Assembly (NCBI GenBank): GCA_002269645.1
Contig: NIVC01002813.1
Location: 62,001 to 126,000, forward strand
Direction of reading: 5' to 3'
Source: Macrostomum lignano
Lineage: Eukaryota
DNA length: 64,000 nt
Each line of letters begins with the position of its first letter. Position 1 is the stretch's first letter. The notes below the pieces were generated by a model that did not search any database, was not told where the DNA came from, and was given only the letters and a program-made list of their open reading frames with translations. A program made the translations under genes and the position numbers. Shown piece after piece: positions 16,701 through 19,700 of this stretch.

Positions 16701-19700
16701 TCTCTGGGTCACTGAGTCATCTCTGGGTCACTGAGTCATCTCTGGGTCACTGAGTCATTTCTGGGTCACTGAGTCATTTCTGGGTCACCGTGTCATTTCT
16801 GGGTCACTGAGTCATTTCTGGGTCACTGAATCATTTCTGGGTCTCTGAGTCATTTCTGGGTCACTGAGTCATCTCTGGGTCTCTGAGTCATTTCTGGTCA
16901 CTGAGTCATTTCTGGGTCACTGAATCATTTCTGGGTCTCTGAGTCATTTCTAGGTTATCGAGTCATTTCTGGGTCACTGAGTCATTTCTGGGTCACCATG
17001 TTGTTTGTAGTTCATTGACTCATTTCTGGGTTACATTTCTAGGTCACCGTGTCCTTTTTAGGTCACTGTGTCATTTCTGGGTCACTTCAGTAGTTCTAGA
17101 GAAATTGAAAATTTTCATGATTACCGAAGTCATTTATCTTTAATTAATTTTGAGCGTATAAATCATTTAAAGTCACTGAATGAATACTTTTTGAAGGTTT
17201 AATAATGCTTTGTAGAATGGCGGTAATTCGATTGCACGAAGACACTCGCCGGAGTATACTTAATAACTTCTAATTCCCTGACTGGGGTATCTCAATAAAG
17301 GATTCAGTAACAGGCAGTGTGGCTGACAGCGAGCCGAACAAAAGTGCACAAGGCGGTATTTAAAAAACGATTTCGCACGCACACAAGTAAATCTGAAATT
17401 CTCAGGCGCCCAAAAATAATGCGTGTGCATGTGACCCCCCGTGACCCTCCGTCACCTGTCCAGAACAGGGCACATTCCGATACAGCAAATGCTAATTGAA
17501 TGCCGGCACTGCCTACTCGGCCTCAAATTAATGCGCAGCGCCTTATTAGCTGGGCTGATTTAGGCTCGGGTATTTCTAGCCAAGCTCGACCAAGCCCAAG
17601 CGGCAAGAGAGTGTGCAGCAGCTCAAGGCCCAGTCAAAGCACCAGAGCTCCAGCGACCGCCATGCCTAACGCCACTGCGGCTAACGGAGGCTCCGTCATT
17701 GACATCGGCCTAGCAGTGGGCCTGCCGCTGTGTGTTGTGCTCATCGTTGCCGTCTCGGCCTCCGTGGGTGGCTTCGTGTACGCCAGAACCCGGCGCCAGG
17801 GCACGGGAGTGTACCGGCCCAGCAACCTGGAGTTCGGTGGCGACAGTCAGAAACGAGTGGCTGCGACGGCCGCTTCTGCGGTGCTGCGGCCGCCTAAAGA
17901 GGAGCGGCTGATCTGAGGGGGGAGGACTGCCAAACCTGCTCTGTGCTTCTAGCAGGCCAGAAGGAACTATTTTGTAGCGACTGATTTCTTTCCTTCATTG
18001 CCACCAGCCCCATTATTTTCAATTTCTTACTGTAGGAACAATAGCAATCTAATCCAAACTCCTTCCTGCACCCACCTCACGCCTTCAGTACATCCCAAAC
18101 CCTTCCTGCACCCACCTCACGCCTTCAGTACATCCCAAACCCTTCCTGCACCCACCTCACGCCTTCAGTACATCCCAAACCCTTCCTGCACCCACCTCAC
18201 GCCTTCAGTACATCCCAAACCCTTCCTGCACCCACCTCACGCCTTCAGTACATCCCAAACCCTTCCTGCACCCACCTCACGCCTTCAGTACATCCCAAAC
18301 CCTTCCTGCACCCATTAGTCAATTCTAATCAATTCTCACCCTCCCTTTTCTTGAATTAACGGAGTTGTACATCAGCAAGAGCTGATGTTTTAGAATGCTT
18401 TTGATCAGTTAAAACAATCTCTGTACAAATCAGTATGACAAAAATTGAATTTTTTTTTATTTCTGAACCCACTCTTTCTTACCATAATTAGAATACTTCA
18501 ATTATGCCGTTTCATTTCGTGTTAATTACGAGCTAGTTAACTTTCTGTTGAAAAATGTTACTATAAAGCAAAATATAGCCGCTGTACAGATTAAAGTACT
18601 TTTCTTTGTACACTTTGACGATAGATGGAAAAATCGTTTCATTTTCTTCCAAGCGATTTTTTTCCCGTAAGAATGACTTGTGGCTGAATGTCAAGCGAAA
18701 CAAAAAACTATTTGAAACCTCAATTTACCCTCTGCCAGCGAAAGTGCATCGAATTTGCGCTCAAGGCCAAGCCAGTGAAGCGCTACATTCCTCAGAGGCG
18801 GCTGCAGTACAAGATCTGGTGGTTTGTCACCTCTACGCCATTCGAGTACGGAATATTTGTCCTCATCATGCTGAACACCATCGCGCTTGCCATGAAGGTT
18901 GGTTGCTTGGTTGGATCTCAAATGATCGTTCGTTTTTATGTATTGCCTTCTTGTCTTCCTGCCCCTCCTCACTCCCTGCCCCTCCTCACTCCCTGCCCCT
19001 CCTTACTCCCTGCCCCTCCTCACTCCCTGCCCCTCCTCACTCCCTGCCCCTCCTCACTCCCTGCCCCTCCTCACTCGCTGCCCCTCCTCACTCCCTGCCC
19101 CTCCTCACTCCCTGCCCCTCCTCACTCCCTGCCCCTCCTCACTCCCTGCCCCTCCTCACTCCCTGCCCCTCCTTACTCCCTGCCCCTCCTCACTCCCTGC
19201 CCCTCCTCACTCCCTGCCCCTCCTCACTCCCTGCCCCTCCTCACTCCCTGCCCCTCCTCACTCCCTGCCCCTCCTCACTCCCTGCCCCTCCTCACTCCCT
19301 GCCCCTCCTCACTCCCTGCCCCTCCTCACTCCCTGCCCCTCCTCACTCCCTGCCCCTCCTCATATACTAGTCTCCCAAGTCTCTACCCCTCTCTCCCTAC
19401 TGATTGGTCTGTCCCGCCCGCCAAATCGCACCTTGCCAGTTCGAAGGTCAGCCAGAGAGCTACAGCTCAGCCCTGGACTACATGAACATGCTGTTCACTG
19501 CAATCTTTACTATTGAATTCCTGTTGAAACTGTTGGCTTTCAGCTTCAGAGTGAGTTGAATTGTTGCTTACCTAATGCTTTTATCAACAACAATCCAAAA
19601 TCTGATTGAAAGCATACTTTGCTCGGCCATTCTCAGAACTACTTCAGCGATCTGTGGAACATCCTTGACTTCGTGATCGTGCTAGGCTCCTACATTGACA

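Follow-up and report, generated by a model that had tools for sequence, protein, structure and literature searches.

A stretch of 64,000 nucleotides (nt) of the Macrostomum lignano genome (GCA_002269645.1, contig NIVC01002813.1, positions 62,001 to 126,000 of the forward strand; this whole stretch is the window, and positions are counted from its first letter) was analysed for an open reading frame (ORF) that lies in an intron of an L-type calcium channel gene, Cav1. The ORF probably represents a stand-alone gene for a leaderless, type III mini-Crumbs protein, carried as a passenger in the Cav1 intron, and it is best read as a functional analogue of vertebrate CRB3 and C. elegans CRB-3. The sequence belongs to the annotated Mlig_3_7 assembly, NIVC01 (PMC5730564).

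The frame is open on the plus strand for 138 codons, from an ATG at 17500 to 17916, with a TGA directly before it, and a second ATG at 17662 would give a product of 84 amino acids (aa). The ORF forms a spike of GC content, 0.63-0.67 against 0.3-0.5 in its flanks. Its features are as follows:

17500-17661 (+): in-frame open extension, 54 codons from the ATG at 17500, most likely 5' untranslated region (UTR) or outron and not coding
17662-17916 (+): proposed mini-Crumbs coding sequence, 84 codons and a TGA stop, equal to NIVC01002813.1:79662-79916, proposed from profile match, codon bias and Kozak context
17668-17676 (+): N-A-T sequon (N3-T5) in the predicted extracellular N-terminus of 14-16 residues, read from the sequence
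17704-17784 (+): predicted transmembrane (TM) helix, about I15-A41, with an intramembrane P22 and 'AR' at its cytoplasmic end, from hydropathy and alignment
17785-17913 (+): predicted cytoplasmic tail, 43 aa, from the match to the Drosophila Crumbs tail in the PDB and from profile matches
17794-17823 (+): FERM-binding motif RxxxGxYxPS (R4, G8, Y10, P12 and S13, numbered from the first cytoplasmic Arg of the tail), from a regular expression
17830-17832 (+): tail residue E16, after the FERM-binding motif
17890-17913 (+): PPKEERLI, a Pro-rich stretch that ends in the class II PDZ-binding motif ERLI (17902-17913), the TGA stop following directly

The initial annotation had described an intact GC-rich ORF with an NAT sequon, a single TM helix and a 43-aa tail, and the ORF listing, GC content and hydropathy agree with each part of that description.

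The Crumbs signature consists of a single membrane pass, a cytoplasmic domain of less than 40 aa, a FERM motif of the form RxxxGxYxPS and, at the C-terminus, ERLI preceded by a Pro-rich stretch (PMC5968619). Residues Y10 and E16 of the tail are functionally essential (PMC4359734). All five of the RxxxGxYxPS residues are present in the tail of the ORF, as are E16, the Pro-rich stretch and ERLI, and the earlier placement of Y10, P12 and E16 at the Crumbs FERM positions, ahead of a C-terminal ERLI, holds by sequence, alignment and motif scan. Two departures from the family are seen. The tail has 43 aa where the family limit is below 40, the surplus being a 6-residue insertion. The aPKC sites TxGTY, a bilaterian Crumbs feature that is missing in C. 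elegans (PMC5968619), are absent as such: the tail reads Q-G-T-G-V-Y. Phospho-regulation by aPKC may differ here because T7 and V9 take the place of T6 and T9.

These motifs are not common in the window. Across its six frames, ERLI followed by a stop codon occurs once and RxxxGxYxPS occurs once, both in the ORF, where 0.11 and 0.08 matches are expected from Markov-1 shuffles; the two occurred together in none of 300 Markov shuffles. A hidden Markov model (HMM) of the Crumbs TM helix and tail was built from 120 database sequences, with the window sequence excluded, and scored on 1,524 open segments. The sole significant segment was 17500-17913 (E 1.6e-9, 34 bits), the runner-up having an E of 0.49. 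Scaled to the whole genome, which at a size of roughly 0.76 Gb corresponds to about 12,000 windows, the E is still about 2e-5. The alignment covers 74 positions, residues 65-138 of the 138-aa frame, and extends from 'SVIDIGLAV', next to the membrane, across the helix as far as ERLI. When the ORF was aligned with 12 Crumbs proteins, 15 columns of the 13-sequence alignment were invariant, among them the intramembrane P22, A41, R42, P78 and E81-I84.

A search of 177,635 distinct PDB sequences with the 44-aa tail returned one match, the Drosophila Crumbs tail (4wsi/4yl8), which is aligned end to end but weakly (E 0.93); the fly Crumbs tail used as reference was checked against the same PDB entry. 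The whole 84-aa ORF had no match in the PDB, and Pfam models gave sub-threshold noise only (MCH, Psg1) on the 138-aa frame. Taken on its residues, the ORF almost certainly specifies a genuine Crumbs-family TM helix and cytoplasmic tail.

The coding signal begins at the ATG at 17662, not at 17500. From 17662 onwards the G+C content of third codon positions (GC3) is 0.74, compared with 0.85 for the exons of the window, and the codon log-likelihood ratio (LLR) of +0.106 per codon is the best of the six frames, reached by none of 2000 shuffles. The extension from 17500 to 17661 has a codon LLR of -0.65 and a GC3 of 0.50, and 624 of 2000 shuffles score as high. The Kozak context is good at 17662 (accgccATGc) and poor at 17500 (aattgaATGc). 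A start at 17500 would place before the helix an N-terminal segment of 70 residues with seven K/R and a net charge of +5, which disfavours translocation of the N-terminus. A further 62 codons before the ATG at 17500 (17311-17499, plus strand) are open in the frame of the ORF and are divided from it by one TGA (17497-17499); this stretch has no coding bias (LLR -0.9) and its openness is probably due to chance.

The hydropathy plot has one hydrophobic peak only (Kyte-Doolittle, 19-residue mean 2.63). No signal-peptide-like h-region follows the ATG at 17500 or that at 17662, in agreement with the initial annotation. The N-terminal flank of the helix has a net charge of -1, while the C-terminal flank has RTRR and a net charge of +4 over 15 residues, a distribution that fits a leaderless type III topology with the N-terminus outside and the C-terminus inside. 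No more than about 10-14 residues would separate the N-A-T sequon from the helix. On the simplest model, translation would start at the ATG at 17662 and the 84-aa protein would be inserted as a type III reverse signal-anchor, as has been proposed for C. elegans CRB-3, which has no signal peptide either (PMC4359734).

The large ectodomain of a long Crumbs was also sought. The EGF six-cysteine pattern has no match in any of the six frames of the window, and in the upstream plus-strand open segments of at least 30 aa Pfam (E ≤ 1) finds no EGF or Laminin_G domain, only Ion_trans, in accordance with the earlier statement that no EGF or Laminin G (LamG) exons are near. No stretch between 16394 and 17661 combines an initiating ATG, a hydrophobic exon and a donor site, as a signal-peptide exon would. 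The EGF/LamG ectodomain and signal peptide that define a long Crumbs are thus not found within the 64 kb, although such exons could lie beyond the 5' end of the window. What is found is the architecture of a short Crumbs, with a short domainless ectodomain, a TM helix and a Crumbs tail in one ORF of 84 aa, the boundaries being read from the DNA.

The host locus can be described from these features:

16192-16393 (+): Cav1 exon, coding for the last part of the domain III pore loop, for IIIS6 and for the first part of the III-IV linker, from Pfam Ion_trans and L-type homologues
16394-18738 (+): host intron of the Cav1 gene in the III-IV linker, 2,345 nt, phase 0, donor CAG/GTGGGG and acceptor CCAG/CGAAAG
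18739-18897 (+): Cav1 exon for the remainder of the III-IV linker and IVS1, from linker continuity and L-type homologues
16463-17086 (strand not assigned): 19-bp satellite, a tandem-repeat array of 33 copies, at the 5' border of the island that carries the ORF
18054-18314 (strand not assigned): 40-bp satellite, a tandem-repeat array of 6.5 copies, presumed 3' UTR or downstream intron

Cav1 exons are found on the plus strand from at least 8.1 kb onward in the window, and the named homologues of the host-channel exons are L-type alpha-1C, alpha-1D and alpha-1S subunits, with identities of up to 71%. The exons that end at 16393 and start at 18739 fuse in phase 0 to give the III-IV linker without interruption. 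Because the flanking exons give an uninterrupted linker, the ORF is intronic and is no overlooked exon of the channel. It lies wholly within that intron on the strand of its host, and its description in the initial annotation as a gene nested in the Cav1 III-IV linker intron is sound. The ORF sits on an island of 967 nt (17087-18053) between the 19-bp and 40-bp satellites, and the island is single-copy among the sequences compared in this analysis. Around the island there are no flanking inverted repeats and no signature of a transposon or captured fragment, and no Rfam family matches the intron (16394-18738).

The evidence on whether the ORF belongs with the short or the long Crumbs proteins is mixed. 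When 1.84 billion representative proteins were searched with a profile and without a word index, 378 matched at E ≤ 0.001, and residues were compared over the 130 listed matches that end in ERLI or GLI, 45 of which bear EGF domains. Arg at tail position 11 or Lys at position -6 is found in none of the 45 EGF-bearing proteins among the matches listed. R11 (YRPS) is present in 9 and K-6 (PKEERLI) in 7 of the proteins among those matches, all of them short and EGF-less. Those with names are fish and frog 'crumbs homolog 3/3a', and the window ORF has both residues. With subtype HMMs of the tail only, the ORF scores 28.0 bits as CRB3 and 27.1 bits as long Crumbs, where genuine members of either class are separated by 40-55 bits in subtype HMMs. 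The ORF is about equidistant from the CRB3 and long classes, its tentative affinity to CRB3 resting on two residues. The protein P0377 (83 aa, leaderless, ending in KPPKEERLI) was considered as a parallel and rejected: it is of the long type (76 vs 33 bits) and probably a terminal exon.

Several features bear on how the ORF might be expressed:

17357-17363 (+): TATA-like TATTTAA, 305 nt upstream of the ATG at 17662, a consensus match only
17571-17579 (+): tatttctag/, the acceptor proposed earlier, which ends in TAG rather than CAG and gives an exon start at 17580, two bases off the ORF frame
17580-17669 (+): second frame of 29 codons and a TAA, GC3 0.85, with 6 of 2000 shuffles reaching its codon score
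17648-17653 (+): candidate spliced-leader (SL) acceptor CTCCAG/, the sole fit to [T/C]TNCAG in 17480-17700, 8 nt before the ATG at 17662
18590-18595 (+): ATTAAA, the nearest hexamer like a poly(A) signal, from a motif scan

The spliced leader of M. lignano is CGGTCTCTTACTGCGAAGACTCAATTTATTGCATG, and its trans-splice acceptors favour [T/C]TNCAG (PMC8629364). About 0.4 matches to this motif are expected by chance in the approximately 200 nt scanned, and CTCCAG/ is a candidate only. The acceptor tatttctag put forward in the initial annotation does exist, but it does not fit the SL motif and leads into a frame other than that of the ORF. That frame, 17580-17669, is the one that the terminal ATG of the SL, or a phase-0 Cav1 donor, would open if spliced at 17580. 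With so few codons it may be a chance result; otherwise it could be an upstream ORF or encode the C-terminus of a three-domain, truncated Cav1 isoform. A transcript that began from the TATTTAA would carry five upstream ATGs (17419, 17429, 17489, 17500 and 17531).

Among some 15 billion proteins, which include the tubulin, EF-hand, Usp and kinase products of NIVC01, neither the 138-aa nor the 84-aa product has an exact match. Likewise, the 138-aa frame had no match at E ≤ 10 among 5.8 billion proteins, the annotated M. lignano proteins included. Since no annotated M. lignano protein resembles the ORF at that threshold, it has not been copied recently from an annotated gene. The host channel itself has no database protein at 90% identity or above, the best being the 71% to its exons, and no gene is annotated in 34161-44160 of the window. 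The L-type channel gene thus seems to be absent from the public Mlig_3_7 annotation. In their supplements, the genome and annotation papers on M. lignano have no entry for CRB or CACNA1, or lack gene tables.

On balance, the ORF is probably a stand-alone leaderless mini-Crumbs gene. Several observations weigh against this. On the ORF as a whole, the subtype HMMs give no preference for CRB3 (34.7 bits) over long Crumbs (38.8 bits). In long crumbs genes, the terminal exon is itself a complete ORF of 40-78 aa with a TM helix and tail, like the window ORF. No AATAAA is found between the stop codon of the ORF and the next Cav1 exon. The frame from 17580 looks coding and is unexplained, and its TAA (17667-17669) overlaps the Crumbs start codon, as ATGCCTAA. 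Finally, and mildly, the ORF is missing from the transcript-based public annotation of NIVC01, a point that counts for little, since the host Cav1 gene seems to be unannotated too. As regards the earlier proposal of an independent, leaderless mini-Crumbs, family membership, the fit to a leaderless topology, the coding bias from the ATG at 17662 and the residues R11 and K-6 all speak for it; the profile scores for the CRB3 and long subtypes are a tie. An old, unselected copy is unlikely, because the ORF is intact and every signature residue has been kept.

The main rival is that the ORF is inert and was copied, as DNA or as a retrocopy that lost its 5' part, from the terminal TM and tail exon of a long M. 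lignano crumbs gene; it would be intact through youth or luck and would give no protein. Such terminal exons are similar to it in size as well as in being self-contained, and the slight lean of the profile scores to the long type agrees with this origin, as do the missing annotation and the lack of a signal peptide, a clear promoter or a canonical poly(A) signal. The genome is also repeat-rich and polyploid, and the region is present in three copies. A block of EF-hand, Usp, alpha-tubulin and kinase genes (38.6-64 kb of the window) is found on three contigs (NIVC01002813.1, NIVC01001441.1 and NIVC01002823.1), the copies on the latter two being 88-99% identical to the window. Hidden polyploidy has been reported for M. 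lignano, and the three-contig block agrees with it.

For a young copy, a recent annotated parent is excluded, as no similar tail is present among the database proteins, including the annotation of NIVC01. For an old one decay is expected, yet the 15 invariant positions, the stop directly after ERLI and the strong codon bias are all intact. An ATG in good context stands exactly at the onset of the coding bias, there is no credible acceptor just upstream of the homologous part and no poly(A) remnant, target-site repeat or inverted repeat, and R11 and K-6 occur in no long Crumbs representative among the matches listed. The inert copy is weakened because it cannot be recent and yet nothing has decayed, and we regard it as unlikely.

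A different transcriptional arrangement would leave the mini-Crumbs functional but without a promoter of its own, the message being SL trans-spliced from Cav1 pre-mRNA within the intron and its expression following that of the channel. In a stronger version, splicing at 17580 would yield the coding-like upstream frame, either read from the AUG of the SL or as the C-terminus of a truncated three-domain Cav1; with the stop overlapping the start (ATGCCTAA), Crumbs would be translated by leaky scanning or by termination and reinitiation. We consider dependence on the Cav1 transcript to be quite unlikely. The idea that apical polarity is tied to the Cav1 locus, also raised in the initial annotation, has the co-location of the two genes as its sole support and is not upheld.

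That a conventional long crumbs gene ends in this ORF, its EGF and LamG exons lying more than 17.6 kb upstream and either interspersed with the 5' half of Cav1 or located beyond it, or that the island has been misassembled across the satellites, is very unlikely. The architecture is identical to that of crumbs terminal exons, 54 open codons precede the ATG, and satellites, which are typical spots for assembly errors, border the island on both sides. Against a long gene, there is no EGF or LamG signal anywhere in the 64 kb, the transcript would need to pass over six or more Cav1 exons on its own strand, the open codons upstream lack coding bias in the frame of the ORF, and the acceptor candidates at the right place are poor. 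Against misassembly, the flanking Cav1 exons join perfectly in phase, and the satellites, at only 0.26-0.62 kb, are short for a long-read assembly.

Also very unlikely as the primary explanation is an alternative 3'-terminal Cav1 exon, in which the IIIS6 exon would be spliced into the island to give a truncated three-domain channel and the Crumbs frame would be 3' UTR or a downstream cistron. A phase-0 donor joined at 17580 does read 29 coding-like codons up to the TAA at 17667-17669, and strand and orientation agree. This frame is short and without a homologue, its acceptor ends in TAG after a short pyrimidine tract, and a complete, codon-biased Crumbs TM helix and tail just downstream would be left unexplained. 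The ORF is not part of Cav1, because the linker is continuous and because the Cav1 donor joined at 17580 reads another frame to a stop. An in-frame Cav1-Crumbs fusion, for which the acceptors at 17539 or 17608 would be needed, was rejected for its frame, for acceptor quality (neither site has a pyrimidine tract) and for topology, as the tail would be extracellular.

The stand-alone mini-Crumbs suggests the following mechanism, put forward from the conserved motifs and the charge distribution. The 84-aa product would lack a cleavable signal peptide and would be inserted through its sole hydrophobic segment, a reverse signal-anchor (type III). Charge distribution would place about 15 residues, including the one NAT sequon, outside the cell and the 43-aa tail in the cytoplasm. 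There, as in other Crumbs tails, the RxxxGxYxPS motif and E16 may bind FERM proteins such as Moesin, Yurt and Expanded, and ERLI may bind the PDZ domains of PALS1/Stardust and Par6 and so help to define the apical membrane. Our guess is that the mRNA starts near the ATG, by SL trans-splicing at CTCCAG/ (17653) or from a promoter of its own.

Three known Crumbs proteins can be set beside the ORF. C. elegans CRB-3 (C35B8.4) is a protein of 100 aa without a predicted signal peptide, for which the TM helix has been proposed as an internal signal, and it has been found expressed and apically localised in experiments (PMC4359734). Judged from the published description, CRB-3 and the ORF, both invertebrate, share the absence of a recognisable extracellular domain and of a signal peptide, one TM helix followed by positive charges, and a tail with Y10 and E16. 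They differ at the C-terminus, which is EGLI in CRB-3 and the canonical ERLI in the ORF. CRB-3 is also somewhat longer and has been seen as a protein, whereas the ORF is nested in Cav1 and known from DNA alone.

Vertebrate CRB3/3a (for example XP_028842265.1 and XP_030646518.1) resembles the ORF in its short, EGF-less ectodomain with N-x-S/T sequons, its one TM helix with the conserved Pro and its tail of about 40 aa with both R11 (YRPS) and K-6 (PKEERLI). Unlike the ORF, it has a cleavable signal peptide, a longer Ser/Thr-rich ectodomain and GTY, with the aPKC threonine, in place of GVY. The Drosophila Crumbs tail (4wsi and 4yl8) has R4, G8, Y10, P12, S13, E16, PP and ERLI in common with the ORF. 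The fly protein, at about 2,100 aa, has EGF and LamG repeats and a 37-aa tail; its T6, R7 and T9 are not in register in the longer tail of the ORF with the 6-residue insertion.

The locus can also be compared with transcription units of M. lignano itself. As in SL transcription units of this species, a match to the acceptor motif stands near the start of the ORF, as a sequence match only. The operons of M. lignano (PMC5730564, PMC8629364) are tandem genes; the ORF instead sits in an intron of another gene.

Short Crumbs proteins are already known in vertebrates (CRB3) and C. elegans (CRB-3), and the ORF, if it is what it appears to be, adds a case from the flatworms, for which literature searches found no description of a short Crumbs. 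A leaderless Crumbs in a basal flatworm would point to 'tail-only' forms that are either old in the bilaterians or of repeated origin. In the fly, according to work cited in PMC4359734, the TM helix and tail carry most of the function of Crumbs, which agrees with the idea of a tail-only Crumbs. A corrected annotation would then be useful for work on epithelial polarity, Hippo signalling and regeneration in transgenic M. lignano. The nesting in Cav1 is a curiosity unless it proves to be conserved or co-transcribed with the host, and the accepted view of how Crumbs proteins work is unchanged by the ORF.

Some other features of the window were observed. Two similar Cav1 exon candidates at 10650-10880 and 12792-12905 (+) encode the same channel segment and look like mutually exclusive alternatives, an arrangement like that of the alternative exons (IIIS2) of vertebrate Cav1.2. 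At 22655-22939 and 22974-23264 (+), in the IVS6 region, two further Cav1 exon candidates lie next to each other, are alike and may likewise be alternative exons. In the alpha-tubulin gene (48782-50590 and 50591-51943, +), the first coding exon contributes no more than the Met. The first intron, of about 1.8 kb, is mostly a tandem repeat with a 45-bp period and varies in length among the three copies of the region.

About 3.1 kb of the window (58197-61311) is missing from both of the other copies, the alignments jumping from 58196 to 61312. Within it are minus-strand ORFs (60044-60861), one bearing DGYSCGVFVCLYA, a stretch that resembles Ulp1/C48-type peptidases found in certain transposons, and the 3.1 kb are probably a mobile-element insertion. 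Satellites are exceptionally abundant in the window, and many of them yield long spurious ORFs. The arrays include a 4.1-kb AT-rich one at 1625-5725 and others at 6.7-7.3, 10.9-12.4, 13.2-14.1, 15.9-16.2, 18.96-19.36, 20.1-20.8, 24.9-26.0, 27.2-28.7, 39.3-41.0 and 45.3-46.3 kb.

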